Assembly: GCA_964057225.1 (NCBI GenBank)
Contig: OZ059900.1
Location: 10,540,001 to 10,604,000 of the forward strand
Direction: 5' to 3'
DNA: 64,000 nt
Source of the DNA: Auanema rhodensis
Taxonomy: Eukaryota > Animalia > Nematoda
Made by a program: the position numbers and the translations under genes. Under the pieces are notes generated by a model. That model did no database searches. It saw nothing but the letters and a program-made list of their open reading frames with translations, and was not told the DNA's origin. Below, piece by piece: positions 6,863 through 44,089 of this stretch; within the stretch, counting starts at the first letter, position 1, and every line of letters begins with the position of its first letter.

Positions 6863-8541
6863 CTATTTATATAAATATATATAAGTCAGAACAAAAAACA
6901 TTTTTTTAAAACATTGACTCAAATTATGTAAAATTATATATTTTTGAAAAATAATAAATTTATTATTATTATTATAGTTATTTATATAATTTTATAATTT
7001 TAAATTTTATTTAACACCATTTTATTTAATATCAAATTATTATCAAATTATTTGTCTGACTGGGTGGTAATGTAAATTAGATCTTATCTTCTTCCTATAA
7101 TTTTCTTTCATTTTAGTTTTAGTCGTACTCTTCTCTCTGTCGTTATCTCTCTTCACCTTCTTTTTATCAATCTCTCTCTCATTCTCTCTCACTCTTTCTC
7201 TCTCTTTCAGTGAATAGCAAGGCTTCTTCTAGACTACTTTCACGTTTTCACGTACTATTTCAATTATTTCGTCTTTATATGATTCGATTTCTCTTCGATG
7301 TTTTGTATCATCTTTCAATCTTTTAACCTTCTATCTTTTATCACGGAGAGAAATTGAGACTTATCAGACAGGCTTATTATGCTTTATCTAACAACTTTTA
7401 CAACTAAGCTGTGCGTAGTTAATAACTGATATTTCATTTTGGACTATGTGTATACAACAACACAACAGGCTGACCAATGATATGAACATCTTTACTATTT
7501 CAAAGATCTTTAAAGAAGATTGAAGACATTACTTCACAAAGTATAATAGAATACAAAAAGAGAGAATTTCTTAAAGTGTTCAGCTGAATAAGACTGAAAA
7601 TCTGGGGTGTGGTATGAGATGAGAAAGAAGGAATACTTGAGTTTAGAAATTGATGATGCAGATGAAGAGGGCGGTCATGAAATGGGTAACCTGAACAGAG
7701 AGTAGAGAGACAGGCGATGATTTGACAACATCAACAGGAAGAGTCCGTAGGCACTTTTCCGCGGTCATCGTTTTTCGCTTATATTTTGTTTTCCCTTTTT
7801 CTCTTTTTCTCTCTCTATCTCGCTCTTTCGATTTTCCTTTCTCTCACCCCTCTTCATATGTTTGTATCTTTTTACCTCTATTAATCTTTTCTTGCAGCCA
7901 TTTTATTACATACTACCGAGCAGATTCAGATCCTTTAATTGGACAATTTTGCATTCATGTTAGATGGCTTTTTAAAGCCATCTTCACGTTTGAACTACTT
8001 TTGACTACATCTGTTCAAATCTCTTGTACTATGCGGTGCATCCGCCTCACACTCTCTTATTTGCTCTTACTTTCATAAATCGTCTCATGTTGTTGAATCC
8101 GTGTTTTTACCTGTATATTGTCTTTCCTATGCCCAAGTTTCTATATGTTCTCCGCTTCAATCTCTATAGTTTCCTATCTTCCTTTACTGAAATATTTCTT
8201 TCTCTCTCTCTCCCTCTCTCTCTCTTTTTCTCTCAATTGCCGCCTCTACCTCTAATTATTTTTGTCATTTCTGACAACTCTTTTGATTTTTCTATTTTTT
8301 ACAAATAAAATTTATATATCTTATATCCTAAGCTTTTTATCCCTATATTCAGTGAATCAAACACAAGCAAAAGCTCTTGCAATAAGATTTGTAGACAATG
8401 CACTTTATTTTGTGTAGCATCTTTCACTCCTGGTCAGTAACTACATGTTGACATTGTTTGCCTTCCGTCTCCAATCAAACATTTTTCTCGAATACAAACT
8501 ACTTGTGACAACTTATCGCTATTTACTTCACTAACCACTCA

Positions 8542-8544
<3 letters not shown>

Positions 8545-8579
<35 letters not shown>

Positions 8580-8585
8580 TTCTGT
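8545..8585. repeat. (CT)n microsatellite
   Basis: Directly visible. Confidence 0.9.
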
Positions 8586-9113
8586 CTATATCCCTCTTCC
8601 TTTCGTTCTATAGAACCACTCATATACTCCATATATATCTTTAATCTTTCTCTCATTTTCTCTAATACTCAGCGTGCTTCTCAGTTATTTTTCTACAATC
8701 TCTTATTTCTTATTGTCATCACTGGTCACGGTTTTTGAACTTTAATTCTCATGCGTTTGAAACAGGCTATCCCTTTACTTGATTATTTTTTTCTTTTTTT
8801 CTCGTACCAATCATATCAAAAACCTATAGATAGCATGATGGATAGTTTAAATAAATGTTTGTTTTACTATATAATTTTTACATATTCTATATTTATTAAA
8901 ATTAGTCAGTTTTACTGACAAGTTTTCTGAAACATTTTCATTTTGTATGCGAGAAAATGATAAAAACAATGTAATTATCATATCATTTAAAGTTTTTCTA
9001 TAACTTTTATAACTTTTCATAACCTTTACTATTTGTTCTTTGCTGTGTTTCGTTAAATTTCTTCTTAAATATGTATAAAATTATTGCCAATATTCAGACA
9101 ATCGACGAGAAAT

Positions 9114-16177: not shown

Positions 16178-18113
16178 AGAAATTAGTCAGAGAAAAGTGT
16201 GGTTACGATGAAGAATGCTATGGTGAGAACACCGTATGTCGAAACAACCGATGTACTTGTCCAACAAATTTTGAAGAATTTGATATTGATGAAAAAACAA
16301 TAATCTGTCGTTTAGGTATAGTACAAAGCTATTACAATTATTATAATTGAGTTGTTTTTGGTTTAAAACATTGGCCAATCTTGTTTTTTTTTAAATTTTA
16401 TCTTTACAGCTCCATCGAATATAGGCGATTCATGTCAGAGAGATTGTAAACCACCTCTACTATGTCGTGATGGCCGTTGTGAATGCTTTGGTGGATCTAT
16501 TATTAAAGGAGCCTGTCGTGTTGGTTTGTAATAAAATTCATCTAGTTTAACTAATGCTGCTAACAATTTTTTCATTTTTCCATTTTCAGCCTGTCCACCT
16601 GGTCAGCAACTCTATGGTGTTGAATGTCAACGTGTTGCTCATTACAGTCAATCCTGTGAAAAAGTAAGTGCTAGTTTAATTCTTTCCATTTATATAATAT
16701 TTTTTTAGGATAGTCAATGTGTGGATCCATTCAATACATGCACTGCTGGAACATGCCAGTGCTCTCCGGGCACTACACGTGATACAAAAAAAAACGTCTG
16801 TTTCGCAGGTTTGCAGTTCCTGATTTCTTTCCTCAATTTGCATTTTTTCCTCAGTTTGCCCTGATGGCATGAGACCACATCAATCCTGTCGACGTCTCTT
16901 TATCAACGACATTGATATGCTAGAAAGTGCTGCTAATACTGACAGCTGTCCATTGGGCTATAGATGCGCAACTTACGGAAGTCCTCATGTAGGACATTGC
17001 TGTCGTTTACGATGTCCCTATGGCGAACCTGATTTGAGGTTCGTTTACAATTAAACTTTCATTTTAAATTTGACAATTGTTTCTCATTTACATTTGTCAG
17101 CATAATGCATTATCGTGCACATTCACCTACGCATAGGAAATTTTTCAAGTTGCGAATGTCTGAGTTAGGCGGAAGTGTCTGACTTAATTTATGATGCAAA
17201 ATTCTAGTTTTAGCCTACGTATACAAAATTACAACTTCAATTCAGTTTAAAGACATTTGTGATAGTTCAATGTATATTTCACATGAATTGAACTGTAATT
17301 TGATTGATCCCACATAAAATCCATCAAAGTTTGAAACTTTTGTGACATTGCAGCCAATCTTGTGACGCAGGAGCACCAGTAGAAACAAAATGTCGTCCAC
17401 TAACTCATTTCTGTTATACAATTAGCGAACCAGGGTATGAAGTATTGGTTGGCGAAGGTATCACGACTATGCTTATAGATGGAAGACATCCCTCTGTTGT
17501 CCTCGACCTTGTAGAGATCCAACACCCTTATATGTTAATGGGTCATGCTTATCTATTGCTCATCGCGATGATCCATGCCAAATTGATCAACAAGTAAAAC
17601 AAAAAACAATATTTATTCTTTATTTTGAAATTTTAGTGTGAAGGAGGAATAACAATGGGTTGCATTCTTGGTACATGTCAATGCAAGCTAGGATTTCAGA
17701 AGGTGAGCATATAAATTCTACAATTATACCTGAGCTCAAAGCATGAATATTGATTTTGTGCAATTTAGAATAATGATGGGCGATTTCCAACTTGCGAGAA
17801 AATCTGTGATTCTATTAATGAGGTTCCATCTAATGAGATATGCTTGCCAAAAGCCAAATTAATGCAAAGATGCTTAAGTACAAAACAGTGCCCGAATTTC
17901 GCCGAATGTCACTTCGGTCACTGTCGTTGCTTATGCGGATATCAACAAGCATCGGTATATATAACTGAGTAAACCACAGTTCTAATTTTCCTTCATGTGT
18001 TATAGGATAACATACTTGGAGCTCGTTGTACTAATCCAGAAGATCCTCTGAGCATTAATACTATTCTTACCGGAGTTGAGCAACTGTTTGGAAATAGAAG
18101 ATCAAAACCATAA
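16178..18113 (+). CDS. Cysteine-rich EB-module/WR1-type extracellular protein, multi-exon (5' end uncertain; a phase-compatible candidate exon lies at 14885-15011)
   Basis: Spliced exons read KLVREKCGYDEECYGENTVCRNNRCTCP, CQRDCKPPLLCRDGRCEC, CPLGYRCATYGSPHVGHCC, CLSTKQCPNFAECHFGHCRCLCGY and so on, ending ...LFGNRRSKP* (TAA 18111-18113). Introns are canonical and short. Confidence 0.8.
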
Positions 18114-18873
18114 TATAAAGAAGGAGAGTCGATATATACGGGTTTTTAATTGTTTTAAATCATGAACATGATGCATAAACATGATTAAATGCATTGAAAT
18201 ATTATAAGTTTATGATATTTTACTAAAGAATCGAATCAATAAATAGTTAATAGTAATATAGAAAGTGATGCCAGGAGCGAACTATGCGGTTTTTCTAAGT
18301 TATAGCTAAAGGAAAAGTCGTTAGTTATTGAAAAGCTTCAATTTTGAGCTTTTATTCACAGGTTTGTAGAAAAAACTGTAAACATATTTCCCATAATCCC
18401 AAGCAGATTTTTTTATTTTTTTATAATTTTCGAATCTAAGATGAAATTAGCTATTGGATTATTCAGAAGTTGTAATCTCGAATAATTTCTGAAATTTTAC
18501 TAGTTTATATTTTCATTTAATAAAATGATACAATTTAAGTGCAATATACTATATTTGTTAAAGTTATTATTTACACAAATGAAGCTAAGTACAAGCTGAT
18601 TATGAAATAGGGCCAATCTTTCAATTTTGATTGAGACAAAAATAATAAGAAATATTTAGTTAGAATTTAGAGACATGATATTGTATGTTAGAGTTTCTGA
18701 AAATCGAATAAAATTTGATGTGAACTCCTATTTAGTTCAGCAATAGTAGTTTATTAGTTTGTGCTTTTTCTATAAGCATTATTTTTTACGATATATTTCC
18801 TATTTTCTTAATTTTTTTCAGTTTTTATTGAATATTTTATAATTTTTAAATAATAAAATGTGCTAATTAATTA

Positions 18874-21800
18874 TTACATGATTAAGTTGGCTAGTCTTGA
18901 CAAAGCAAAACTTAATAATATGGCAGTGAACAAGTTTGAAACAGCAGATGAATTTCTTCTGGCTGGTCGTTTTGTAGTTGTGCTAGTTGGAGCAGCGGTA
19001 GTGGTCTCACTTTCGAATAATCCAATGACTAATTCTCCCTAAGATTTGGAAAATAAATTGCAATTCTTCAGCAACTTGGACAAACCTGGTCGTTTCCAAA
19101 TCCACTATCAGCTGGATTTCCAGGTACGCAATTGACAGTGTCACCAATAACCAAGGTGAAGAGTTTATCGTCACAGACACAAGTTGTTCCATTGCAGTGT
19201 GAATCCAACAAGCATTCTTGTCCATGAGTACATTCTCCTCCTGGATAAGCGACACGATCCTCGCTAAGTAAGCGTCCAGAACCACCTGCAGAGTCACGTG
19301 GGCTTGGAATTTCTTCGCTGTAAATAATGTTATTGAAATTCATATGGCAGTATTTACATACGCAGTGAAAGGTGTTCCTTGTCCATCCCATCCAATGTAA
19401 GCTTGATCAATTTCATTTTGGTTTTGAAGCCAGCTGATAAGTGGCTCATAGTACTCAAGCAATGGAGTGACATCCAATTCAGCTGTGAAAATAGTTTCTC
19501 ATACCAATTTCACTGTAGTAGCTTACCTTTTCCGGTGATTAATTCCAAGGTATTCAACCAGCTAATAGAAGATCCCTTCTTCATAGCGGTCATCAACTTT
19601 TCGGTTGTATCTTCAGACAGAATACATCCTTCACTCTTAAAGCGTATACTTGAAAATATCCAATTAAGTTATTGAAATCGTACCAGAATTGCTCCTTGTG
19701 GGCAGACAGACTTGAGAATTTGGAATTGAGCAATATAAGTAATTACATCTCTAATAGCTGGTGTATGTTTCTATAATTTGTTTCACTATTATAGTCTGTA
19801 GTTGATTACTTGGAATACCTCAGCTATAAGTGGCATAACAAGAGCATCCAAGTTGGATGAGTTGTATGGTTGAGGAGCACGAACTCCATCATATTCCTTG
19901 CGAAGTTCCCACCAGCGATCATTCATTTTGGGAGTTGGTACCTTGCCTTCGAAAAGCTCGTACCTCCAGTTATCAGCGGCTAATTGCAATGGGATCTTGG
20001 CAACATTTTCAAGAGCTTCTCTATAATAATAGAAAATGAATCATCAAATTACGGTCATGTTAATTAATCTTACTTGTATAGTCTGTTGATGACTACTGAA
20101 TCACGAATCTCAAGATGATCAGCTGGAACAAGTTTTTGAGCGTACAAGTAATGTGGATTGACCGATAAATGAGAGAAAACATTTGCGATAGCTTCGTTGA
20201 TTGAAGATGAAGCAGGCTCTCTGAAAATTTTAAAGATATGTAATCAGATATGTGATCAGTTTTCTGTCAAAAAAGCCAATTATAAGATAATTTGCCAGCA
20301 AACACTCAGTGTGAAAATATACCTGAAGAGAAGAGGCTGCTCACGGTAGAGGTATTGATAGTAAGTTTGCGCCATCAATGAGTGGGCTAATTTGAAATCA
20401 GAATCACCAATTTGAGCGCAGACTTTAACTCTATAAGTAAATTAATTAGATAAGGTTGGTTATATGCAGTTTCACATCAAACTGCTAATATTTAATAGGA
20501 TTTACCTGAAATCTTTCTCGTCTCTCATATCAATGGCTGCTGGTGGATTGCAAATCATGTCGCGACTCCAAACACGAACAAAGACAGAATTAGTCCAAAA
20601 TGTTTTTGGAAGAGTTGGGAATCCAACAGATTTGAAATAACGATAAGCCTAAAATCACTTATATAATGTGATTAACGATAATTATCATAAATTAATGATA
20701 ATTGAATCGTCTAGACGTTACACATACCTTAACAAACATCTGTTTAGCAGTAATATTCTGCGATTGGAAAGTGGTCATTAAATCTTCAGTAATGAGATCC
20801 TTGTCATCGAATGGCTTTGTTTGCTCGTAATGAACAGCCCAATCTCCATCAACAGATCCTAGCAAATGAGCTGGAATCATGGAGTCCTTGCTAAGATCAC
20901 GGGCATCTTTGTAAATTCCTGCTAATTGTCTTCTGATATAAGCGTGAAGCTGAAAGAAGATGCGAATTCAATTTGAAAATTTCGATTTATTTCAAACCTG
21001 TTGATAAAATGGTTGAAGTTTTTCGTTGATTTGCTTCATTAATCCCTTAATGTCAATCTTGGGTTTTCCGCTTTTGCCAGATTGATCAATAGCACTAATC
21101 CACATAGATCCACCGTCAGCGAAACCATTGACTTTACCTCCTTAAAGAGATATGAAAAGTAAATTCAGTTTCATTCATTCTTGAAACATGTTTGTATTTT
21201 CACAAACCTTTGTTAGTTAAATCAATAAGCTTCTGATAGTTCTGCTTAGCTCCAGCAATAGCCTTGGAGTAATTAACAAAAAGAGCTGAGAGACGGGTAG
21301 CGTTCTTATCATTTTGGAAAATGCTCTCCAGATCAACTTTTCTTAAATCCAATTAATGATGACATGTATGAAGATAACTATATACCTAAGAGCACATGGT
21401 GGGTCAACATCAGCGTCGCAAATTGGAGCATTATGAATCAACTGGTTGATCTGCAAAGACGTCAGAACTAATATTCATTTTGCACTGCAAGATTAATCTT
21501 ACGTTCTTGTTAGCTTTAGAAAATTGGGTAAAATCAGCATTTGAAAGAGCAGACATTCCTTCAAAAGATACGCTCTCAAGTTGTTTTTTCAAAGCTTCAT
21601 CCTTAATTTCGGAAGTATCGAACTGCTTAGCTTGCATGGAAGTAGATTTAACAAACAGAGCCAAAACCTATAATATGAAGAAAACTATAGCTTGCAATTA
21701 AATAGATTAACATACATCTTCAGCTTCATCAAGAGAAGCTTTAGCTCCAGGTGATGCATTTGTGACGTATGTCCAACTGGCCTTAGCGATTTCTCTCAAA

Positions 21801-28089: not shown

Positions 28090-29792
28090 AAATTTCATCA
28101 AATATTTGAAATTTCAATTAAAGCCAAATACTAAATGAGAAAGAAGCACAAAAGATAACGTTTGGAATAGTTAAACAGATGAGCTATTATTATTTTTATT
28201 ATAATTATTAAAATTTCTAATTAAATTAGAATTATCTGTGTTAACTGCATCATTCGTATATTGATTATAATCATTATTGGGAATATATTGGAACTGAGAA
28301 GCTGCTTGGTGATTTGGTGCTGTTCGAGAGATTTTAGTTGCTATATCAGCAGATTCACTTTGATACTCCTTGATATTGAATGGATAACTCTGAAAACATT
28401 GATACATCTTTGCCATCTCTTGGAATCAGATACCTCATTTCGTTGCATCACTAAATCAAATATGTAAACACCAACCATGAGGAACTCCAAGACCTGAAAG
28501 AAATTCAAAGAAAATTAGTAAAACGTGATTCTCAATTACAGCAGCTGCAATCCATTGTCCACGAATATGACCTGACCCTCTTCCTTGATAATTAACCTAA
28601 TAATGAAACTGTTGTTTAAGACGTTCAGTTAAGACAACCTCAGGATCATTTGTGAGCACAGCCATCCAAGTTCCTAACAAACCACAGATAAACATAAGAA
28701 TTATTCCAATCAGAGCATAAACTCTTTCCTGCAAATTATAACAAAAATAAAGATGATTGGATATATCACATACAAGTGCTAGTGTCATTCCACGTAAAGC
28801 TCTATGGCCATTTATGGAAAATAAGAGAAGAACAATAGCACAAAACAATGATAAGGCCAAGAATATTATAAGAACAAACACCTAAAATAAGGGAAAATTT
28901 GACTTTTTTGACAAATAACTCTTAATTCCTTACTTGTCCTAAAGCTGTATAACCAAAAACATTCATAATCATTGTACAAGCATCACCACCACATGTGATT
29001 TGAACAAGCCATTGTAGGATAAAGAACATGACCTAATAGTTCAATAAGAAGTTAATATTATCGATTGAATTCCCTACCAATTCAAAAATTCGTAAAAGAC
29101 CCATTGGATGTAGCCACATGCCTGGAGTACATTCAATATCTTGATCATCATCATAAATCTATTTGAAGAGGTAAATATACAATGGAATACACTATCTTAG
29201 CAACTTACCAAGTTCTCTTCAAATTCTTCTACTTGTTCTTGTTCCTCTTGTTCTCCAACATACCTTTCATTGTATTGGGACATATTCTAAAAAAAACAAA
29301 TTTTGAATACAAATTCGGAAAAATCTTGAAAATTGAGAGTTGAAAGAGAAACAAATAAGAAAGTTTCATATTAATGAAAGGTGAACGAGAAAATTAAATT
29401 ACATTGTTAGCTAACAACTCATTCTTATCAGCAACTACTATTAAATGCTCTTTGATAAGCTTGTTTGCATGTATTTCGTATCATCGATAAGTCATTTGAA
29501 TGAAATTATGAGTCGAACCAGCTTCCTCGGGTTTCAATTGTTTCCTGACAGAGTAACCGGTGTACACTATTCAACACAGCTAATTTCAAAAAAAAAATTT
29601 ATTGAAAATGAAAATTCACAGGTGCGGTGAGTAAAAAAACGTCGATTATCATATTGGTCTGAAGAACAACATTATCGTTTGGATACTTAGAAAAACTATT
29701 TACTTACAAAAAATTTATAAAAATAAAAATTTGAAACGAAGAACTATGGTTGCAACCAGTACAACTTGGAGAATTGTATTGTCATGCTTGAG
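28090..29792 (-). repeat. Left arm of a ~1.7-kb inverted segmental duplication (partner 38874-40516)
   Basis: Reverse-complement identity with only a few SNPs and small indels. The left arm carries an extra ~60 bp near its inner end (~29715-29777). Confidence 0.95.
28171..29283 (-). CDS. MARVEL-like four-TM membrane protein, copy A (8 exons)
   Basis: Spliced product MSQYNERYVGEQEEQEQVEEFEENLIYDDDQDIECTPGMWLHPMGLLRIFELVMFFILQWLVQITCGGDACTMIMNVFGYTALGQVFVLIIFLALSLFCAIVLLLFSING...ERVYALIGIILMFICGLLGTWMAVL...WIAAAVLEFLMVGVYIFDLVMQRNE...NNNSSSV*. Four hydrophobic helices; the GLLRIFEL and W-AAA...Y--D motifs are MARVEL-typical. Confidence 0.75.
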
Positions 29793-29891
29793 CTGGAAAG
29801 ATGAATTAACGTTTGAAAATAGATAATAAGAAGATCTTACATGGTAAACATTTGGTTCAACACGAGAGATCATAGCGACACTTTAGAAGAA

Positions 29892-32800
29892 TCAAAGAGG
29901 TGGCATAACTGCCTTAGTGGTTTTCTCCATATCTCTGGTGAACAAATTGGCGGAACATTTGAAAAACAATATGGAAGTTTCCCGAACAGTGATTAGATGA
30001 TAATCTTCTTTAAGCTGTAATCAAGCTGGTGTTTTAGATATGCTTGCAATATAAATACCGTGGAATAATATCTTCTGATTGCTCTTTTAGTGAACTTATC
30101 TTCATGGTTTTCATAGAGAATTACTCGACTTGATTGAAGAAACATTCTTCGATAAATATATGAATCATGAAATGCAGGATATTCGAAATAGAAATCTGGC
30201 ATATATTTTTCCAATAAAGATTCGAATGTTGTATCCTCTGTAATGTTTCCGAAAAACAACACAGTATCACATGGACGATAGCTAAAAATCAAAAAATATA
30301 GTAAATTCTGCAAATTGAATTACTGAAATGATAAGGATTTTAATAAAAAAAACATACGAATAGATAAAGTTGATATACTTTGCTGTTTCGTATTCTATAC
30401 ATAGATTCACTGTATTTCCAGAATGACTGGTAATCGGTACTACAACTGGTAGATTTTTCTTTGAATAAGAATTCTCATCAATTGCCTGAAAAACTTCAAA
30501 TAATCTATAATCTATCTCAAATATTCACTTTTTCATAAGCATTTTTGGTGATTTTGAATAAAGCTTGAGTAGAACATCCATTTCTGATAGCAATGCGTAA
30601 GCCCATTAGCAAAGATAAGCGAATCATTTTCTCATCGTTGTTCTAAAACATTAGTAATTAAGTTTCCAGTAAACAATAAATTTTATTTTGATATTACCTC
30701 ATGTCGTCTAAGCCTAATTAGTTCTTTTTGAGAAAAATATTCTAACATATTGAATAATTCGATTAAAGTATAGTCGTTATACGTCTAAAAATTCAAATAA
30801 TCAAAATAGAAAAAAAGATTAAAGTTCATTTACCGGGGTTAAAGTTTGACGATAGTCCGATAAAATTTTGTAACACATATCATTGGTTGTGACATGTTCC
30901 AATGACAGTAAAGCTCGACCAAGTCTATTTACAGTTTTAAGTTGAAACTCTATTGAGTAGGAACCAATGATTGATAATAGATAAATTACCGCCTAAAGAA
31001 GGATTTTCCATGTTTTAGAATGAAAAATGGATACCTGCTCTAGTTTGTCCACATCCTTTAGTACACTTATATCAAAGTCGTTGTATAATCGCATAGTTAA
31101 CAGAGTGAAAATTGATAGCTCACGTATTTGATTCTGTACAGATTGACGTTACAAATCTTTTTTTAAAATTTAAATAACAAATAATCTTATTTCTCTCAAA
31201 ACAGTTGAAACTTACAGCTTTATTGATTTCGTTTCCCTCATATTGGTATTCATTACTGATGTACTTGTCGCATATCGTTTCATTCATTAAAGTACTTAAG
31301 TAGAATTCTATTTGATCCGGGAATGATTTAGGATACTCTTCTCTTAGTTTAACATGTAAAGTATGCGGAATCTAATGAAAAAGCTTAATCTTTCAATTAT
31401 TCTAATATAAACTTACTTTTCTCAAATCATCATAAATGCTGAATAATGCAAGTTTTTTCTTTAATAGAAAGAGTTTTGGTAAAGCTACTTCTGTTTTTTT
31501 CTCTGGAATCTGGAACCCTTCAGGAATCTCCGTTTTCTGTGCACTACATGGTAGTTCAAGCTTTTGAGATGGAAGAGCACAAGGTTGTTCGTAACTACCG
31601 ATGCTTGGCAACTCTGCGGTGTATTTCGGATCATCAAATAGCTTTGACAGATTTTCCAAAGATTTTTCGTTGTTTGTTTCAGTCGAACATAGCTTTTCTT
31701 CCAAAGTCGAAGCAGATTGCTCACTACTAATTGTTTTAGCAGAACTGTGGGGAGAAGAAATATCCACCTTCTCCTTTTGAACCTTGAATATACTTTCGTT
31801 ATCAGATTGTGGGACTTCATCTGATGTGAAAATACTTGACTGTAGATAGTTGTTTTTGACTTGATGCATGTTCATAAGTGTTATGTTTTTAGGTCCAGAC
31901 TGCTTATACGGTGTAGCTATGAACGCTTCTTCTATGCATAATTCTTCATGGAGAACTTCTTCAGATCTTATTGTTCCGTTCTGAACTTGTACTGTATCGA
32001 AAACTTCAGGGATAGAAGAATATTCTTGTTTCTTATTGCAATCTTCTTTTTTCTTTATGCTAATGGATTCTGAAGTGAGACTGTCTGTCTAAAAATTCAA
32101 ATAATCAAAATAGAAAAAAGATTAAAGTTCATTTACCGGGGTTAAAGTTTGACGATAGTCCGATAAAATTTTGTAACACATATCATTGGTTGTGACATGT
32201 TCCAATGACAGTAAAGCTCGACCAAGTCTATTTACAGTTTTAAGTTGAAACTCTATTGAGTAGGAACCAATGATTGATAATAGATAAATTACCGCCTAAA
32301 GAAGGATTTTCCATGTTTTAGAATGAAAAATGGATACCTGCTCTAGTTTGTCCACATCCTTTAGTACACTTATATCAAAGTCGTTGTATAATCGCATAGT
32401 TAACAGAGTGAAAATTGATAGCTCACGTATTTGATTCTGTACAGATTGACGTTACAAATCTTTTTTTAAAATTTAAATAACAAATAATCTTATTTCTCTC
32501 AAAACAGTTGAAACTTACAGCTTTATTGATTTCGTTTCCCTCATATTGGTATTCATTACTAATGTACTTGTCGCATATCGTTTCATTCATTAAAGTACTT
32601 AAGTAGAATTCTATTTGATACGGAAACGATTGTGGGTTTTCTTCTCTTAATTGAATTTGTAAGGTTTGTGGAATCTAAATAAAAAAAGTTGAATCTTTCA
32701 ATAGTTTTAGTATTGACTTACTTTAACCAACGGATCAAAATTGTTAAAAAAGGTTAATTGCCTTTTTGCACTAGCTGGTGTAGCCGGAATCCCTGTTTGA

Positions 32801-34641
32801 CTTCTTTTGGGAGTCATGCATTCGTAAAATTCTACACGTTGTCTGCTACAAGATCGTGAGATCTGATCCCGCAGAATCAGATTTGGTCGTCGGCAATGAC
32901 TTCTAGCTCTTGGCAAATATGCAGATACAATTTTTCTTTGAGTGTGAGATTGTTCAGGGGGTGTTATTGTTGAAACTTCTCTTTCGAATAGAGGCAGAGG
33001 TAATATTTGTTTTAAAGTTGGTGATGTTTCCTCAGTATCTAATATATTAACTGCTTTGTTGATGCTAGAAATTTCAACTTGTGCACCGGAACGAGCTAGG
33101 CTTTGTCCTGAAGGACATCTGTTCCAAGAACTCACAGGAGTTATAGGTATGCAGACGTCAGAAATTGTTTGTACTGGTTCCAAGTCAAGTTGCGGTACTG
33201 TTGGTGTCTGCTTCAATTCATTGAAAACAAATTTTTTTGTTGAAGCAGGAGTTCTCAGTAGTTCATCTTCAGGAGTATTTGTTTCCACCGCATTTTCAAT
33301 AGTCAGAGGTTCCAATACGGTAGTACATTCCAGAACCGACTTTGTAATTGGCATAGCTGTTCCCTGTTTTACTGGTTCCAGGTCAAGTTGCGGAACTGTT
33401 GGTGTCTGCTTCAGTTCATTGAAAACAAAATTTTTCGTTGAAGCAGGAGTTCTTAGTAGTTCATCTTCAGGAGTGTTAGTTTCTGCCGCATTTTCTATAG
33501 TCAGAGGTTCCAATTTGGTTGTACATTCCAGAACCGACTTTGTAATTGGCATAGCTGTTCCCTGTTTTTCTTCTGCTGAATCCGCTTGAACTGGAAGTTC
33601 CAACATGCTTTCTTTTTCCACCGTAGTTGTACTTTCACATTCAACTCTTTTTGAAACGTATGCTTCGGAACATATTTCAATTTTGTGAGTCTCTTCTTCT
33701 GACGATTTCCTAATATTACAATTCTCATTCAACAAATTAGATGAAGGAATACTTTTGGTACAGGGATGCTGTTTCCTTTTGGTAATATTACGAATGTTAG
33801 GATGTGCAGAAACATGATTGTATTGCTTAACTGATCGGCTCCGAGTTTGATTTTCTGGCTTTGGAAGTGGTACAACAACAGGCTTATCCTTGTTTCTTGC
33901 TGAGCTAACACTGCGACTAACTAGAAAGTCTCTCACGCGTAGATCTCTTTTCAATCGTCGACTGCGAAGATTTTCTGTTGCAGTAGGAGATGGTTGAGGT
34001 GGTTTACAAATTGTTGGTTGCTCAATAATTCTCCTCATGCTAGTACTACGACTAGTTAACAGACGGCGTTGTTCATCACGATTTTCTGGTCTGCTTCTTG
34101 AGGGCTCCTTGACTTGTGAGGTTGTTGCTTCTACAATTTTCGTCTTGTCCTCTTTCTTCGTTAAATATTCTCTACCAGTAGAGTCATCTCGTACAACACT
34201 ACTTGGTCGCGAGTGTCGAGACGAAGAAGTTGGAGGTGAGCTGCAGCTACGCAACATCAAACTTTGATTTAATGAACGCGGTAGACGAGAATTAAACTTT
34301 CTTGTGGTGACGGAAGTAGGAGTACCACGCATAACACTTAAACTCTGACCAATACTGTCACATTTAGTAGTCGAGGAACGAAGAGTTTGATGAGTAACAG
34401 ACGATTGACAAGTATTATTTTGCAGTAAATTGGAAACCCGAGCAGTATCGCAAGATTTAACGTTTGAAGACAATTTCAAAAGATATAATTCTTTTGCTAT
34501 CTTTTCTTTTCTTGACATGCTTGAAGGATAACGTGAATTTACCTTCCGCGACTTGATTGGATCAGGAGACACTCTTAGAACTTCAGCGGAATCAGTGCGA
34601 TGTCGGCGACATTGAGGAGCAGAACAAGTAGTACGACCCAT
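29892..34641 (-). CDS. ~1,360-aa multi-exon protein: long basic S/T-P-rich disordered N-terminus, duplicated helical module, C-terminal degenerate tyrosine-recombinase-like domain
   Basis: TTTTCAG acceptor at 34668-34674 and ATG (MGRTTCS) at 34641. Exon 1 (34641-32722) comprises most of the 679-aa ORF. GT-AG splicing keeps one frame through the 672-nt exon 32088-31417 and on to the stop at 29892 (...KTTKAVMPPL*). Domain identity was inferred by eye. Confidence 0.7.
30783..32619. repeat. ~535-bp near-identical direct repeat (30783-31316 vs 32087-32619) duplicating three coding exons and their introns; similarity continues at lower identity for ~100 bp more
   Basis: Base-by-base match apart from ~1 SNP and an A-run indel. 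Confidence 0.95.
33172..33567. repeat. 2 x 198-bp in-frame coding tandem repeat (66 aa, KQGTAMPITK...QLDLEPV)
   Basis: Visible twice in the 679-aa translation with a few substitutions. Confidence 0.95.
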
Positions 34642-34775
34642 TTCAATAGTAAGATTCAAGCAGATATCTGAAAATAAATCCTGTGACGATCTAAGCAACA
34701 ACAAAAACAATTGAGAAATAACAAAAAAAAATATGTGTGATATCAAACGAAGAAAAAATATGAAAGTGAGAACGA

Positions 34776-35155
34776 TTATAGTATATCAAAAGCTTAGATA
34801 ATGTAAACAACAACGACAACTAAGAAGTTCTGTATTAGAATAGGATAGTATGAGTTAGGTATCGAAAATGGAAAAAATAATTTTAACATAAAAAGAATAT
34901 GCGTAATAGCTAAGTATAGAATATAGGTTATAGTATATCAAAAGCTAAGATAATGTAAACAACAACGACAACTAAGAAGCTCTGTATTAGAATAGGATAG
35001 TATGAGTTAGGTATCGAAAATGGAAAAAATAATTTTAACATAAAAAGAATATGCGTAATAGCTAAGTATAGAATATAGGTTATAGTATATCAAAAGCTAA
35101 GATAATGTAAACAACAACGACAACTAAGAAGCTCTGTATTAGAATAGTATGAGTT
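34776..35155. repeat. 152-bp tandem repeat, ~2.5 copies, directly upstream of the large minus-strand gene
   Basis: GTATATCAAAAGCT recurs at 34781, 34933 and 35085; units are nearly identical. Confidence 0.95.
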
Positions 35156-35213
35156 ATATTGTTATGACAAATGCAAATAAAGTAATCATTAAAAAAACTC
35201 GGGGATGATAAAT

Positions 35214-35449
35214 ATATTTAGGCATTGAACTGAAACCGCGAACCATTTAAATTGTAGATCATCTATTGATCTTCTTACCTCATCGTAGATCTTGTTATTA
35301 TAACTATAACATAATATGACCTACCATTTATTTAATGTCTTACTTATGCCGTTTTATAATATGTTTTTAATTTTTTTTGTTTTCTAGCTTTGTTCTTGAT
35401 CATTAAATCTGCGAGTAGATTTTGATTTTTCTTTTTTTTTCAGTTCCCT
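35214..35449. repeat. ~230-bp direct repeat, copy 1 (partner 38653-38875), ending in a strong + strand TTTTTTTTCAG acceptor
   Basis: Shared ATATTT.GGCA.TGAACTGAA...GCGAACCATTTAAATTGTAGATCA...GCGAGTAGATTT...TTTCAGTTCCCT, roughly 90% identical. Confidence 0.9.
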
Positions 35450-35733
35450 ATGCTCAATCCATAAACGTTCTCAAAGTCTCTGCTGGATACAAAAAAGCAA
35501 GAAAGTTAAACTCGTGTTTTTCTTAAAAAAATGTTACAGAAAGATCGTATAAAAACCCGTATAAAATGATCAGTCAGAATATTTCATTGAACGTAAAATT
35601 TTGTGGTACTGCTGTAGGACCTAGTGAACTCAAAGACACTGGTTGTCGCAAAAACATTCGTCATATACAGAGAACCTTTCTTGTGTGAGCTCAGTTAGAA
35701 ACAAGGATAAGTTTGTCGTGCCGAATCGTAAAC

Positions 35734-36775
35734 TTAGAAAAGTGTCAGAAGATGAAATTCACCGAATTGAGAAATGTATACGTTCCGAAGAGAGCTGAAT
35801 GTCAAAGTGCAAATACGGTGAAAAAGGAAAATATGTTGGAACTTTAGAGTCCAATTGGATTCAACAGAAGAAAAACAGGGAACAACTACGCAAGCTACAG
35901 CTAAACAGGTTTTCAATAATATTAACACATTTTTCATTCAAATAACATCACTTTTCAAGCCTAAAGGTTTAGGATGATCCACTTTTTTTGACTCTAAATT
36001 TTCCTCTCTTTCAACACATTTTTGTCAATTTCAAAATTTTTTCATAATAATAGAGGAAATTCCACGAAGACCTGCATGAGATGTTGTTGCCCTTTTTTGC
36101 AAGCATGTAACGCTTAACGAGAAACGAGAAGTGCTGTTAAGATTTATTCACAAAGATAAAAAAAACAATAGCAACAAGTCTAAATAATTACTTGGGTTTG
36201 GCAGTGCAGCTTCGTTCTGTATTGGGGGATAGGATTTTGTAGATCTATGAAGAACTGGTCAAAGGCATCGTCACTCCAAATCTGTTGAGCTCCGTTGCAC
36301 CACAGTCGTTTTCTCCCACACATGTTTCCCAATTCAACGTTGTTGACGATCGTAAACGAATTCAAAGGAAAATCAGCCTGAAAGCAAATTTTCTTTTTTT
36401 TCTTCTGGAGAAATATCTTTCTTAAACATTTTATGAAATGAAGATTATATAGCAAAAGTGATTACACCATGTGAATGAACATTGCAAAATAGCAGATTCA
36501 TAATCTGCAATTCCAAACGAGATTAAAAAATTACTGCATTCAACGTTCAAAATTTGAATTTTATATGGCAATAATTCAAAAGTCTCGTTCAAGTTTGACT
36601 CTGCGCTTGTTTTCTATTTGAACTGATCAAATTTACTCCTAACCTTTAGACGTGCGAGAAAATCGGCATCGGACTCGTCGTCGTGTTCAAAATCGAAGTA
36701 ATATCCTTTGGTATTCTTAAATAGTTGTAAAATTAAAAGATAACGTTGACTCTCTCATGCCTTTTGTAGGGTCAT
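35734..36775 (-). CDS. Putative orphan gene (~130 aa), unknown function; start uncertain
   Basis: Frame-compatible exons NTKGYYFDFEHDDESDADFLARLK / ADFPLNSFTIVNNVELGNMCGRKRLWCNGAQQIWSDDAFDQFFIDLQNPIPQYRTKLHCQTQ / HFSFLVKRYMLAKKGNNISC / SSLRNVYISQFGEFHLLTLF*. The candidate first exon MTLQK needs a GC donor. Confidence 0.45.
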
Positions 36776-37492
36776 GGCTGATTTGCATTGCTTTCCTACT
36801 CCTTGCCACTCGCATAGCAGATGAATACAGTTGGAAGCATCCATGACTAATTTTTGAAAATATGGCAAGGCGACAGAAGAAGAAGAAAGAGAAAGAGTAA
36901 GAAGGATCAACAGCGATAGATGTCCCATTGCCACACACTGACCAATGACTTCATATACATCAGGGCGGAGCCTTGTATTTTTATTTTGCCAGTGGGCCTC
37001 TCTCTTTCTGTCACGATAATGAGCAAGGCCAAAAGAGACTGATGAATTGCAATGATAAGAAAAGACGGAACGAGAAAAAAAGTCGAATTGTACAGTTGAA
37101 GAGAGATAAGGGAGTATTTCTCGGATCAGACCGAAAGATGCATATTCGTTATTATATGGAATCGAACATAAAATAATTCCAATGAATACAGATAAGTTTG
37201 TATGGTATATGCACTTATACCAAACCACATATGTAAAAAATTTTTGGAAATCAGATTTCTTAATTTATTCAGTTTTATGTCATCTTCACTTGATAAATTT
37301 TGTGAAAATATGAGCGATAATCAATTTTTAATAACTATAATATATTATCATTCTAAAGATTTATTCGAATTAATGAGAAACAAGGTGTATATCGTTACAA
37401 TCGTTTGAAAATAATAATTCATTCGAAAAATTTAAAGAAACTAGTCTTGGGAGGATTAAAATGTTTTATGATAAACTGAGGGGAAAAAATTG

Positions 37493-38549
37493 TTAGAGAG
37501 CGCTGTCGCAGCATATCCTCTGTCCTCTAATCGAGTAAGGTATCGACTTGTCTATCGGACATTGACTATTGAAGCTTTTTATAGCCCCAATGATCGTCTG
37601 AGACAATTCTTTCATACGTCCCTGAAATGTTTTTTTCTTAAGATAAATCAGAATTTAGCTTACCTTTAAATATTCTTCTTCTGCCGCTGCTTCTACAGCA
37701 TTGTCGGCATTTCTGCCTAAACGAACCCGGCCAACGCAGTTATGAAGATTTCCGCCACAATATTGGGTTTTCACCCATTCGCAATTCTGAAACAAAGAAC
37801 AATATCAAGAACCACTGTAAGTGTACAGTATGCCTTACCTTTTTTATAAAAAAATAATCGAGTAAGGTATCGACTTGTCTATCGGACATTGACTATTGAA
37901 GCTTCTAATAGCTCCAATGATTGTCTGTGACAAGTCTTTGATTCGTCCCTGAAATGTTTTTTTCTTAAGATAAATCAGAATTTAGCTTACCTTCAAATAT
38001 ATTTCTTCTGCCGCTGCTTCTGCAGCATTGTCGGCATTTCTGCCTAATCGAACCCGGCCAACGCAATTAAAAATATTTCCACCACAATATTGGGTTTTCA
38101 CCCATTCGCAGTTCTGAAACAAAGAACAATATCAAGAACCACTGTAAGTGTACAGTATGCCTTACCTTTTTTATAAAAAAATAATCGAGTAAGGTATCGA
38201 CTTGTCTATCGGACATTGACTATTGAAGCTTCTAATAGCTCCAATGATTGTCTGTGACAAGTCTTTGATTCGTCCCTGAAATGTTTTTTTCTTAAGATAA
38301 ATCAGAATTTAGCTTACCTTCAAATATATTTCTTCTGCCGCTGCTTCTGCAGCATTGTCGGCATTTCTGCCTAATCGAACCCGGCCAACGCAATTAAAAA
38401 TATTTCCACCACAATATTGGGTTTTCACCCATTCGCAGTTCTGAAACAAAGAACAATATCAAGAACCACTGTAAGTGTACAGTATGCCTTACCTTTTTTA
38501 TAAAAAAATAATGATAACAGAACATGAATGAGAACATTAAATAACTCAT
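37493..38549 (-). CDS. Small Cys-rich, possibly secreted protein gene with its exon 2-exon 3 block triplicated (full form ~102 aa)
   Basis: Exon 1 MSYLMFSFMFCYHYFFIKK; exon A NCEWVKTQYCGGN(IF/LH)NCVGRVRLGRNADNA(A/V)EAAAEE(I/E)YLK; exon B GR(I/M)K(D/E)LSQTIIGAI(R/K)SFNSQCPIDKSIPYSI, followed by IFL* in the 5' units or RGQRICCDSAL* in the 3'-most unit. GTAAG donors and TTTCAG acceptors, all phase 0. Confidence 0.6.
37528..38511. repeat. 3 x 327-bp tandem repeat, each unit containing two exons and two introns
   Basis: TAATCGAGTAAGG recurs at 37528, 37855 and 38182. The two right-hand units look identical; the left unit differs at 19 exonic sites. Confidence 0.95.
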
Positions 38550-38616
38550 TGGTCAATGTAAAAATAATGATTACAGAACATGAATGAGAACATTAAATAA
38601 CTCATTGGTCAATGTA
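38505..38616. repeat. 2 x 56-bp tandem duplication covering the start codon region of the Cys-rich gene
   Basis: AAAATAATGAT(A/T)ACAGAACATGAATGAGAACATTAAATAACTCATTGGTCAATGTA occurs twice. Confidence 0.9.
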
Positions 38617-38652
38617 TGCCATCAGTTATAATAATAAGATCATACATGGCAC

Positions 38653-38875
38653 ATATTTGGGCACTGAACTGAAGGCGCGAACCATTTAAATTGTAGATCA
38701 TTTATTGATCTTCTTACCTCATCGTAGATCTTGTTATTATAACTATAACATAATATGACCTACCATTTATTTAATGTCGTTTTATATTATGTTTTTAATT
38801 TTTTTGTTTTCTTGATTTGTTCTTGATCAGCAAATCTGCGAGTAGATTTGATTTTTCTTTTTTTTTCAGTTCCCT
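38653..38875. repeat. ~225-bp direct repeat, copy 2 (partner 35214-35449), abutting the right inverted arm
   Basis: See copy 1. Its terminal CT overlaps the first bases of the inverted arm. Confidence 0.9.
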
Positions 38876-40516
38876 CAAGCATGACAATTGACTATTTTTT
38901 GTAAGTAAATTCTTTTCTAAGTATCCAAACGATAATGTTGTTCTTCAGACCAATATGATAATCGACGTTTTTTTACTCACCGCACCTGTGAATTTTCATT
39001 TTCAATAAATTTTTTTTTGAAATTAGCTGTGTTGAATAGTGTACACCGGTTACTCTGTCAGGAAAGAATTGAAACCCGAGGAAGCTGGTTCGACTCATAA
39101 TTTCATTCAAATGACTTATCGATGATACGAAATACATGCAAACAAGCTTATCAAAGAGCATTTAATAGTAGTTGCTGATAAGAATGAGTTGTTAGCTAAC
39201 AATGTAATTTAATTTTCTCGTTCACCTTTCATTAATATGAAACTTTCTTATTTGTTTCTCTTTCAACTCTCAATTTTCAAGATTTTTCCGAATTTGTATT
39301 CAAAATTTGTTTTTTTTAGAATATGTCCCAATACAATGAAAGGTATGTTGGAGAACAAGAGGAACAAGAACAAGTAGAAGAATTTGAAGAGAACTTGGTA
39401 AGTTGCTAAGATAGTGTATTCCATTGTATATTTACCTCTTCAAATAGATTTATGATGATGATCAAGATATTGAATGTACTCCAGGCATGTGGCTACATCC
39501 AATGGGTCTTTTACGAATTTTTGAATTGGTAGGGAATTCAATCGATAATATTAACTTCTTATTGAACTATTAGGTCATGTTCTTTATCCTACAATGGCTT
39601 GTTCAAATCACATGTGGTGGTGATGCTTGTACAATGATTATGAATGTTTTTGGTTATACAGCTTTAGGACAAGTAAGGAATTAAGAGTTATTTGTCAAAA
39701 AAGTCAAATTTTCTCTTATTTCAGGTGTTTGTTCTTATAATATTCTTGGCCTTATCATTGTTTTGTGCTATTGTTCTTCTCTTATTTTCCATAAATGGTC
39801 ATAGAGCTTTACGTGGAATGACACTAGCACTTGTATGTGATATATCCAATCATCTTTATTTTTGTTATAATTTGCAGGAAAGAGTTTATGCTCTGATTGG
39901 AATAATTCTTATGTTTATCTGTGGTTTGTTAGGAACTTGGATGGCTGTGCTCACAAATGATCCTGAGGTTGTCTTAACTGAACGTCTTAAACAACAGTTT
40001 CATTATTAGGTTAATTATCAAGGAAGAGGGTCAGGTCATATTCGTGGACAATGGATTGCAGCTGCTGTAATTGAGAATCACGTTTTACTAATTTTCTTTG
40101 AATTTCTTTCAGGTCTTGGAGTTCCTCATGGTTGGTGTTTACATATTTGATTTAGTGATGCAACGAAATGAGGTATCTGATTCCAAGAGATGGCAAAGAT
40201 GTATCAATGTTTTCAGAGTTATCCATTCAATATCAAGGAGTATCAAAGTGAATCTGCTGATATAGCAACTAAAATCTCTCGAACAGCACCAAATCACCAA
40301 GCAGCTTCTCAGTTCCAATATATTCCCAATAATGATTATAATCAATATACGAATGATGCAGTTAACACAGATAATTCTAATTTAATTAGAAATTTTAATA
40401 ATTATAATAAAAATAATAATAGCTCATCTGTTTAACTATTTCAAACGTTATCTTTTGTGCTTCTTTCTCATTTAGTATTTGGCTTTAATTGAAATTTCAA
40501 ATATTTGATGAAATTT
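38874..40516 (+). repeat. Right arm of the inverted segmental duplication (partner 28090-29792)
   Basis: Reverse complement of the left arm. Confidence 0.95.
39323..40435 (+). CDS. MARVEL-like four-TM membrane protein, copy B (same predicted protein as copy A)
   Basis: Same 1,113-bp span and exon structure as 28171-29283. The one coding difference noticed is synonymous (GGC/GGT). Confidence 0.75.
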
Positions 40517-40884
40517 GTAGTATACACTACTATAGTTCCCAATATTTAGTTACTGTCATTAGTATATTTTTGTTATGTTAAATTGAAATTATTGTACTTT
40601 AAAGCGTTTGTATTGCTTATTTCTACACATTCTTCATGAATATAATTTTCTTATATCTTAGATTTGAAGCATTGAACTCGTAGACTCGTATTGCTGCTGT
40701 TCATTCTTTGCTGTTCATTCTAACCATATGTGTAATTCGAGTCTCTGATGTTGTATTGTTTCTTGTCATATTCTTGTAAAACAATAGTTTAGAAATATTT
40801 GACTTACTGCTACTATGTGATGTCAAAAGATAGTGCTTATGTCAATATACTATATTACTCTTTTCCTGTCTTTTTATCTTCCCC

Positions 40885-40940
40885 TTTTCTCTTTCTCTCT
40901 CTCTCTTTCTCTCTGTCTCTCTTTCTCTCTTTCTCTCTGT
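40885..40940. repeat. Degenerate (CT)n microsatellite
   Basis: Directly visible. Confidence 0.8.
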
Positions 40941-42805
40941 TCCTCTTACTAGTAATCTCACTCTCTTTATTCATTTTTCTCTCATTTAGAAAGTTTATTT
41001 TGTTTATTCAGTATTTCATGATTAATTAACTCGTTTTATGATCTTTGGAACATACGAGATTTTTTAAATGAATACTATACCACACACATGCGTGTGATAT
41101 CCTCATGTTACAAAAAAATGAGCCCAATGAGTCCAGACATAGATACAAAGTTTTATTTTGTACGTAATAATGTTCTCAGTCCTCATATTTTTTGTATCGT
41201 TTTCTATTGTCGCTATCTCATCTCAACTTAGTGTTTTTCTTTTTTTTCTTCACAGTTCAATGACGCTAAGCGCAGCATATCGAACGCAAGCGTTTAACTT
41301 TACCCGTTCAGTGAAAATTTCATTTTTTGACAAAGTGGATTGTCGAACAAAAATATTTACCCTATTTGTTCATTGAGAACACCGCTTCAACATTTACACA
41401 CGGTGAGATGGCTAACAAGCAGTCTTCTCAATTCTCTCTCATCATTCCTTTTTTTTTCACAATCTAAATATCTGTCTTTCTTTTCTCGTCTTGATCTCAA
41501 TATCTTTCTTTCCTCTCTGGCGATCTGAGGCTCCGTAGGCTAGCCACGTCCATATGTGTATTTGTGTGTGTGTGTGACTGAGTTTGTGTGTGCTTATGCA
41601 TTGCTCAACATAGTAATGCGAAAACCTCATCAATGACTTGTTTTTTGTGAGCAGCACAATACCTCTAGAATAATCTGAGTTACTCTGACATTTTTTTAAA
41701 CTCATAACTTTTTTTTTAGATTTTTTAACTTTCAAACTATAGTTCCGCACGCGCTCTTTCCTAGGTAAAAGTATAGATTTATTGTTACCGGCGTAACTGC
41801 ATTATCTTGTTCAATAATGTCTTCTTTCTTCATTTTTTATAGAAAATTGTTCCTTAATCAAAGTTCCAAGCCTTAGAAAACCAGAATAACAGGATATTGG
41901 CAGCGTTAAGTTTAAGCTCTTTTCATCTTCTTAGTTCCACATTCATATATTTATTTAAAACTTTCCTTGAATCGCTTTTCGAGCTTATTACGACTCACTT
42001 AAGAGAGTAATAAAATGTCTCATTTGTTGAAGGTCTTCTGTCATATACTATGCACACATAGATTGGAAAATATGCTAATATACAAATATTCTTTACGTGA
42101 CATCTTCTCTTAATAGAATAATTTCTTCTTTCTTCTTATAAGTCAGTTATACTTCCTGCGTCAGACGCCTGTCGTGTCCGCTCACAAATCCACAGCTATT
42201 TCCTATATTTTTTTTAACAGTCGCTTAGCTTCTCCTTTTTCTCTGAATCACGCTCTGCTTTTTTTATCTATCTGTCGTTTGCCGTTTTCAATTTTGTCTA
42301 ATTCTTCTATATCAAATCGAAAATTTAGCATTTCGTTTGCACAATTAATTCAAAATGTCACCATCTTTCGCAAATTACTGCCGCAATCAGTAACGTCTAG
42401 ACAAGTTTAATATCAATCTCACCTACGTGAACGACAATGACGACGTCGTATTCGAAATGTCCAGTATTTGCTTAGCTGTATGACCGTCAGACCTCCTACG
42501 TTCTTCGACCATCTAGCCAACTTTTCAACACTTATGCTTCAATGTCCATTGAAGTGACCCTTATCCGGTCTAACCTCTTCACGTGCTTTCTCATTTCATA
42601 TCTTTTCGTCCCTCTTTTCCCCTTTATTCTCCTGAGTTGTCAATGCAATATGTTCAATTTGCTCTTATGACGGTAACATACATATGCTTACTTCACTATT
42701 CTAACTTATAAATATCCATATTACTATACGAAAAATATGTAAATTATTTATTTCTTTAATTTTCTATCTATTATTTTCTTTAGAAACAACAGCATATATT
42801 GTAAA

Positions 42806-44089
42806 ATGTCGCGCTGGGACAGTTTACCAATCAGCACGCAAGAGCAAGATATGTTATCAGCAGCTACAACTTATCCGTAAGCTATATACATTATTTCTAA
42901 ATTATATAATAAGTTACATGCATTATTTAATTTCATAAATAATAGATAAATATATTACATAAACTTTTTTCTATTTCTTTTTCACAAAGGTTTAGTTAAC
43001 TTTTCGCCAATGTTTATTTGTTTAGTTCAACGCAATCGTCTGATTATATTTTACGAAACGCTATCAATGGATTAATACGACAGGAAATGTCAGGTAACTT
43101 GAATAAATATAATTGGAAACGATACAATTTTCTAAGGAAATTATAATTTTAATTATGAAAAAATTATCGTTCATATGTTTTTTATGAGAAGGTTTGAAAG
43201 TGTTTAGCTTTAGCGTTATGTTTAGCCTGAAAAAATAAAATAATTTGAAATTAAAATTTTTTTTTTTAATTTTTATACTAATTTGACAGATTCCGGACAG
43301 AATATATGCTATTATCAGCGTATTGGCAGCCGAATACCAGTTCCATATGTATGCAATCTTGGTTGTTGTAATCACGGATGTTGTACTGTTGCAAATTTAG
43401 CCGCGTAAGAACTTTTTTTTTGAAACAATTATACAAATAATGTCGATTATCCGTTTGAGATACAAAATGAGCAAAGAAAACAAAAAAAACAACGCACTTT
43501 AGCTCTTATCCCTCACTTTCACGAGAACATAGATGTTGTTGGTTTAAAATAAGAAAAAAACCTTCTGATCTGAATAGCTAAAGCCTCTCAAAATGATATA
43601 TTATTTCATCGGATAGTTGCTCAATTTTTTACTAGCCTTTATAGACTACTCTATTTATCTTTATCATATTTTTCTGGTATTGAATTCTCTTGTAACCCCA
43701 ACTCAACAGAAATAACCAAAACAGTATATTAATACCTGAGAAACTGAAAAGTGTTTCAAAAATTGAAAAAAATATGTTTTCACTTTCAAAGAATTGAATT
43801 GTTATTAAATGTTATTTCTGAATTTAGAACATCAAATTCATTTGGATGGGCTATCGGACTACTATGCTTGTTGATAATGGCTGTAATCTTAGCTATTTTG
43901 GCGATTGGAGCAGTATACTACCTGAATAAGCAGAAAGATCGTATCCATAAGCAGCAGTTACATGATCAAACGGATGGTTCATCTGTCAGTCAGGTTAGTT
44001 TATCAATAGCATAAGCAGAGAATAATGTTTTCATTACAAGTTCAACTAAAAATATAATTTAGGGAAGTGCTTACCGAGATACCTATTGA
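42806..44089 (+). CDS. CX-module-like single-pass membrane protein (5 exons)
   Basis: Spliced MSRWDSLPISTQEQDMLSAATTYPSTQSSDYILRNAINGLIRQEMSDSGQNICYYQRIGSRIPVPYVCNLGCCNHGCCTVANLAATSNSFGWAIGLLCLLIMAVILAILAIGAVYYLNKQKDR...GSAYRDTY*. The C-Y...C..GCC..GCC cluster precedes a TM helix, and intron phases are consistent. Confidence 0.7.

Follow-up and report, generated by a model that had tools for sequence, protein, structure and literature searches.

The window analysed here, a stretch of 64,000 nucleotides of the nematode Auanema rhodensis (contig OZ059900.1, hereafter C8; C8:10,540,001-10,604,000), contains an island of 12,427 bp in which two near-identical inverted arms, each carrying a complete gene for a predicted membrane protein, enclose a spacer of 9,179 bp (29715-38893). 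The spacer holds one long orphan gene, which we call gene B, together with a number of smaller duplications and remnants (Table 1). The APS4 assembly of this genome was obtained from PacBio HiFi and Hi-C data at more than 100-fold coverage and amounts to 180.9 Mb (bioRxiv 10.64898/2026.08.27.747507).

When the window is compared with itself, the dominant inverted pair is formed by 28090-29714 and 40516-38894. The repeat thus lies where the original prediction had placed it and the spacer length is close to the 9.1 kb expected, while the arms, which had been put at about 1.7 kb, measure 1.62 kb. The two arms, one of them reverse-complemented, are 99.4% identical over 1,625 aligned columns; the few substitutions and indels that had been noticed amount to seven mismatches (a divergence of 0.43%) and two indels of one base. 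A search of the whole genome (180,911,798 bp in 112 contigs) returns exactly two copies of the arm, both at the island. The arm ends are sharp: past the outer ends no homology was found, only low-complexity matches, and inward of the arms the search for older homology gave a single identical stretch of 15 bp, beyond an indel of about 60 bp. No target-site duplication is present at the outer flanks (GAAAACTGA / GTAGTATAC).

Each arm carries one intact gene of eight exons and 262 codons. The two copies stand head-to-head, 9.2 kb apart, and each faces outward, as had been claimed. The introns are short (42-52 nt), and the acceptor TTTTTTTTAG lies three bases 5' of the ATG. Every exon, every splice site and the stop codon of the right copy are kept in the left one, and the two translations are identical, since the sole exonic difference between the copies is a synonymous base (39799/28807); the other differences between the arms (six substitutions and the two indels) are all non-coding, among them a variant in the UTR (40441/28165). 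The duplicated unit begins about 430 bp 5' of the ATG and ends about 80 bp 3' of the stop: all seven introns, 429 bp of upstream DNA and about 80 bp of downstream DNA have been duplicated along with the exons, at the same 99.4% identity.

The protein is predicted to have four membrane helices, formed by hydrophobic segments in exons 2/3, 4, 5 and 6/7, followed by a tail rich in Asn and Gln. The fourth helix depends on splicing at a weak donor, as intron 5 (39968-40009; 28638-28597 in the left copy) begins with the non-consensus GTTGTC in both copies. Homology searches for this gene and for gene B were run exon by exon, and the spliced models were checked for phase, splice sites and stops. No Pfam family, including the MARVEL profile PF01284, matches any single exon, nor was a match obtained when the profile was run exon by exon over the genome; a word search for relatives was also negative within its length window. 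MARVEL clusters come out on top of a feature search of the ESM Atlas, with a score of 0.86 that is at the level of a lead. The gene may on this basis be called MARVEL-like, the Atlas match being a lead and not a proof. A paralog is found on the same contig at C8:5.62 Mb, where exons 2-5 are collinear and 36-47% identical and exon 6 matches weakly (E 0.28), which indicates that the membrane gene is a member of an older family of small size.

Gene B lies in the spacer and runs on the minus strand. It joins in phase several pieces, namely an open reading frame (ORF) of 679 codons, the duplicated units of 0.66 kb, an open exon of 224 codons and the exons that had been described as a separate tyrosine-recombinase-like ('YR-like') gene at 29892-30642; the latter turn out to form the 3' terminus of a gene of 12 exons with its start at 34641. 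All phases fit across its 11 GT-AG introns (42-82 nt), its only stop codon is the terminal one, and a TTTTCAG acceptor is found 26 nt 5' of the ATG. Given this base composition, the probability that chance alone leaves 692 codons open is about 8e-24. Gene B is single-copy in the genome. A word search with exons 1 and 5 found no relatives, although its length window may miss full-length kin of single exons, and when the last exon was compared with 1.84 billion representative proteins (phmmer) only two matches were returned, both of them repeat proteins that we take to be spurious. A THAP-like start ('CSAPQC') was considered and rejected, as neither Pfam nor the PDB supports it and the match to Tako8 is a repeat artefact. 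That the left membrane gene is co-transcribed with gene B, as an operon, is a weak proposal, since about 700 nt separate the stop codon of gene B from the acceptor that precedes the ATG of the membrane gene.

The rest of the spacer is made of duplicated and decayed material. A fragment in opposite orientation to gene B is collinear with its first exon: its matches (to residues 18-84, 245-256, 327-349 and 351-362) are spread over three reading frames and it contains a stop, which identifies it as a pseudogene fragment. At the DNA level, this relic and gene B form an inverted pair (33541-33724 / 35723-35899) with 76% identity. Further on, a low-copy fragment is shared with another chromosome, C4, and a neighbouring piece of C4 matches spacer positions 38563-38659 at 88%; the similarity of the fragment is alike in all six frames, hence it is considered non-coding. 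In the interval C4:12377369-12380828 (positions 2-361 and 766-1401), the shared fragment adjoins ORFs with a cysteine-rich 'CGCWGCGCFSCHTGC' motif, presumably similar to a retroelement envelope-like protein. It may be that this shared piece comes from the non-coding end of a mobile element. The array of 327-bp units has no start codon, and the second exon-like piece of each unit has an in-frame stop. Units 2 and 3 of this array are identical, while units 1 and 2 differ at 19 positions, all of which fall within the 233 nt of the two exon-like pieces, the 94 nt of intron-like sequence being free of differences (chance about 0.002).

Pfam recognises no family in any ORF or exon of the spacer, and scans for tRNA genes and Rfam families over 22-46 kb found nothing. 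The spacer had been described as holding novel genes and at least six duplications. More than six duplications were indeed found (the arrays of 327, 152, 198 and 56 bp, and the dispersed pairs); as for the novel genes, the absence of known families stands, but the spacer is mostly one orphan gene plus debris.

Table 1. Features of the island and of its flanks (positions in the window).
Feature	Position	Strand	Details
Peptidase_M2 (ACE-type) gene	~19.8-22.2 kb	-	Pfam
Left arm of inverted repeat	28090-29714	-	1,625 bp; self-comparison
Left membrane (MARVEL-like) gene copy	28171-29283	-	8 exons, 262 codons; ATG 29283, stop 28171-28173
Orphan gene B	29993-34641	-	12 exons, 1,345 codons, sole stop terminal
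Gene B, last exon	30281-29993	-	Tail of the 'YR-like' gene of the original prediction
Gene B, three-exon module, copy 1 (exons 6-8)	30783-31446	-	Pairs with 32087-32751
Gene B, three-exon module, copy 2 (exons 2-4)	32087-32751	-	Pairs with 30783-31446
Gene B, exon 1	34641-32722	-	640 codons, rich in Ser, Thr, Arg and Pro
Tandem repeat, 198 bp x2, in gene B exon 1	33166-33568	-	66-residue protein repeat
Tandem array, 152-bp units x2.4	34726-35197	.	Between gene B 5' end and relic
Region upstream of relic	35214-35449	+	90% direct copy at 38653-38875, adjoining right arm
Gene B relic, inverted, frameshifted (pseudogene fragment)	35458-35884	+	Collinear match to exon 1
Non-coding low-copy fragment	36166-36653	.	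83% identical to C4:12378869-12379328
Tandem array, 327 bp x3	37528-38508	-	Two small exon-like pieces per unit, GT-AG introns
Tandem repeat, 56 bp x2	38504-38616	.	Self-comparison
Right arm of inverted repeat	38894-40516	+	1,623 bp; self-comparison
Right membrane gene copy	39323-40435	+	8 exons, 262 codons, intact splice sites
Right membrane gene copy, exons 1-4	39323-39397, 39448-39528, 39574-39672, 39725-39832	+	Exon model
Right membrane gene copy, exons 5-8	39878-39967, 40010-40066, 40113-40172, 40217-40435	+	Exon model
KDEL receptor gene	45.4-46.4 kb	-	Pfam
COE/unc-3-type gene	51.5-60 kb	+	Pfam (COE1_DBD + TIG)

A signature of gene conversion is found within gene B itself, in which a module of three exons occurs twice. 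Its copies differ at only two positions in 534 bp (30783-31316), which corresponds to 99.6% identity; in the next 130 bp, which belong to the same continuous alignment, 38 differences are counted (about 71% identity), and the similarity is then lost. The switch from 99.6% to about 71% sits within an exon and looks like a clear conversion-tract boundary. The large exons that precede the two modules align with each other from end to end, in a collinear but weak manner, as 7 of 300 shuffled sequences reach the same score. Taken with these exons, the modules fit an old tandem duplication of 1.3 kb whose distal part would have been overwritten recently. A tract of 99.6% lying beside a stretch of about 71% suggests that ectopic gene conversion has acted here recently. 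The inverted direction is likewise two-tiered, with 76% identity between gene B and its relic and 99.4% between the arms.

The signature in the spacer implies that the close likeness of the arms, too, may be due to conversion and not to a recent origin. The original prediction had invoked arm-to-arm conversion; this holds insofar as the locus plausibly undergoes conversion, but for the arms themselves a recent origin stays as an alternative. The mutation rate in Caenorhabditis and Pristionchus is estimated at about 2-3e-9 per site per generation, so that, with a divergence of 0.43%, the arms would last have shared one sequence, in order of magnitude, a million generations ago.

We argue that the island is an inverted duplication, made at the DNA level, of one complete gene unit in a fast-evolving interval, and we give this explanation a probability of about 70%. 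The inverted gene duplicate at the locus is either young or homogenised; it is of a kind that has already been described in rhabditid nematodes, and its mechanism is an ordinary one. The duplicate would have originated during repair, by fold-back or template switching, a route that has been put forward for other inverted duplicates of young age. Its arms would be alike either because the duplication is recent, as the divergence of 0.43% suggests, or because they have been made uniform by ectopic conversion in recent times. The spacer shows no machinery of its own and consists of the orphan gene B, a decayed relic, tandem arrays and a stray non-coding fragment.

Several points weigh against this explanation, or at least against parts of it. 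A single assembly cannot separate recent duplication from conversion. Searching exon by exon may miss membership of a distant family, and the transcription of gene B and of the membrane gene is inferred from the DNA. If intron 5 were left unspliced, an in-frame TAG would end the membrane protein after 164 residues and three helices. Last, the inverted relic mirrors the position of gene B, and this position hints that the palindrome may predate the present arms and may once have extended beyond them.

The latter point leads to the strongest competitor, which we consider clearly less probable than a simple inverted duplication. According to this proposal, the ancestral inverted duplication included gene B along with the membrane gene, the inner part of the palindrome has decayed to 76% identity and become a pseudogene, and the outer arms are continually homogenised by conversion, perhaps because two working copies are selected for, much as in the palindromes of sex chromosomes. 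The relic is on the opposite strand and in mirror order relative to gene B and the arms, and a conversion-type tract does exist, in the internal repeat of gene B. The arms differ in their exons by one synonymous change only, compared to six substitutions and two indels in their non-coding DNA. If the island were on the X, it would also lie on a chromosome that in A. rhodensis is without recombination in both hermaphrodites and males (PMC6469403). However, the symmetry axes do not coincide: that of the arms is at about 34,300 and that of gene B and its relic at about 34,700-35,000, several hundred bp away. Decayed homology past either arm end was not found, apart from the 15-bp match, and two independent duplications would account for these data as well. 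To show that the arms evolve in concert, a second species would be needed for comparison.

A bolder version, which we regard as doubtful, is that the island is a miniature palindrome, in the style of those of sex chromosomes, on the poorly recombining X of a nematode with three sexes, or that the membrane gene and gene B together form a selfish element. In the palindrome version, conversion may preserve the two MARVEL-like copies while the inner palindrome formed by gene B and its relic decays. As regards sex linkage, the genes of the C. elegans X map to three linkage groups of A. rhodensis, LG5X, LG2 and LG4 (PMC6469403); on account of this spread, the sex linkage of the island cannot be deduced from neighbours whose orthologs are on the C. 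elegans X.

A selfish locus of the toxin-antidote type, in which a novel membrane protein would be paired with a fast-evolving orphan partner, is very unlikely. The comparison that comes to mind is with peel-1/zeel-1 of C. elegans, and the locus has several of the expected ingredients, since gene B is an orphan, the four-helix gene is lineage-restricted and local rearrangements are many. On the contrary, the membrane gene has a MARVEL-like signature and a paralog that is older and shares its exon structure, which indicates that it is not a de novo toxin; and it is common for orphan genes to occur where an interval is being rearranged.

The proposal that gave the locus its special appeal, namely that a tyrosine-recombinase-like protein encoded in the spacer inverts or mobilises the island as a cassette, is likewise very unlikely. 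It originates from the tail of gene B, in which, read by eye, 'LLMGLRIA' and the C-terminal 'RRYY' loosely recall box I and the catalytic tyrosine. The GLR and the terminal RYY are a resemblance only, seen by eye and without a reliable alignment, and the box II candidate reads H-D-S-Y instead of H-x-x-R, the arginine being missing. A scan of the genome with the Phage_integrase profile (PF00589) detects nothing at the locus, whereas in other parts of the genome it recovers no fewer than 31 true recombinase genes. Pfam gives no match for any exon of gene B at E values up to 10; the best match of its terminal exons to PDB sequences is an unrelated protein (E 0.6), an ESM Atlas search with the same exons found none, and the phmmer search described above returned nothing but the two repeat proteins. 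Against a profile built from the DIRS recombinases of the genome itself, the terminal exons of gene B score no better than shuffled versions of themselves. An AlphaFold2 model of the last exon alone has a predicted local distance difference test (pLDDT) value of 43, which makes it unusable for a comparison of folds. All these searches being negative, the recombinase-fold gene that had been placed in the spacer is not supported.

Nor does the island have the attributes of a mobile unit, as which it had also been presented: the arms exist in two copies only, gene B is single-copy, there is no target-site duplication at the flanks and no transposase was found. On the same grounds (no target-site duplication, no extra copies, no transposase domain) we rejected a DNA transposon with terminal inverted repeats and a foldback element. 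As for inversion, homologous recombination between arms of 1.6 kb could flip the spacer, but this would change little, the arms being equivalent, and nothing suggests that flipping is used as a programmed switch.

The DIRS-type elements of this genome, present in at least 31 copies, have intronless recombinase ORFs of 413-438 codons beside ORFs for reverse transcriptase (RT) and RNase H. Their recombinases score 32-53 bits against PF00589 (for instance at C1:12974802-12975278 and C8:25845349-25845825), and several copies form nearby inverted pairs, such as that at C1:12.975/12.998 Mb. They serve here as the reference for true recombinase genes, and the tail of gene B has no demonstrable likeness to them: the intronless ORF, the many copies, the PF00589 match and the RT/RNase H neighbours are all absent.

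An assembly artefact, in the form of a falsely duplicated or chimeric arm, is most improbable, given that the nine differences are spread along the arms, unlike what is seen in a chimeric fold-back, that the window is free of N, that the assembly is based on more than 100-fold HiFi coverage of an inbred line, and that single HiFi reads are long enough for the whole 12.4-kb structure.

The flanks of the island carry ordinary conserved genes, as the original prediction had it: an ACE-type gene to the left, and genes for a KDEL receptor and a COE/unc-3-type protein to the right. The programmed DNA elimination that takes place in this species (A. rhodense in the source) involves only 28 internal break sites (bioRxiv 10.64898/2026.08.27.747507). 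With so few break sites, and with conserved somatic genes on both sides, the island probably lies in DNA that the soma retains. To the left of the ACE-type gene, several cysteine-rich exons are found at 16100-19400, and the ORF 19068-19391 gives a sub-threshold match to the EB module (19.0 bits for a cut-off of 24.3). Between the island and the KDEL-receptor gene, an open segment of 88 codons (43748-44011) has one clear membrane helix and no Pfam match. Intergenic low-complexity tracts of (CT)n/(TC)n type, at 2730-2950, 7100-8650 and 40790-41030, produce long spurious ORFs rich in Leu and Ser.

Inverted duplicates similar to this one are known in C. elegans, where newly arisen duplicates frequently lie next to each other in inverted orientation and have a median span of 1.4 kb (Katju & Lynch, as reported in PMC2728529). 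Like these, the island is of kb scale, concerns one complete gene whose copies are on the same chromosome in opposite orientation, and has near-zero synonymous divergence; the span of its arm, 1.6 kb, is close to the median given there. Unlike these, its copies are separated by 9.2 kb that hold another gene, and the species is a different one. Another comparison is with the inverted repeat of the hsp-16 genes of C. elegans, which was attributed to gene conversion (Russnak & Candido 1985, as reported in PMC3966223). The hsp-16.1/hsp-16.48 repeat, as it is summarised there, is also gene-bearing and has near-perfect arms, including their non-coding DNA, but its arms are 1.9 kb long with two genes each and surround a centre of 416 bp, whereas the island has one gene per arm and a gene-bearing spacer of 9.2 kb.

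The palindromes of primate sex chromosomes combine arms that are more than 99% identical, intact genes in the arms and a unique spacer, and conversion is a candidate for their maintenance. The island shares these traits, with arms that are ten to a thousand times shorter.

The recombinase, from which the locus drew its particular interest, is unsupported. If a comparison with other Auanema strains or species showed that the arms evolve in concert on the X, the model of palindromes maintained by conversion would be extended to a nematode chromosome with restricted recombination, and if crosses showed distortion, this would point to a selfish element; neither condition is indicated yet. In 12 kb, the island brings together an intact inverted duplicate, an orphan gene with a homogenised repeat and a decaying mirror copy of the first exon of that gene. 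As such it is a case, resolved in full within so short an interval, of the ways in which new gene copies and orphan genes arise in rhabditid genomes.

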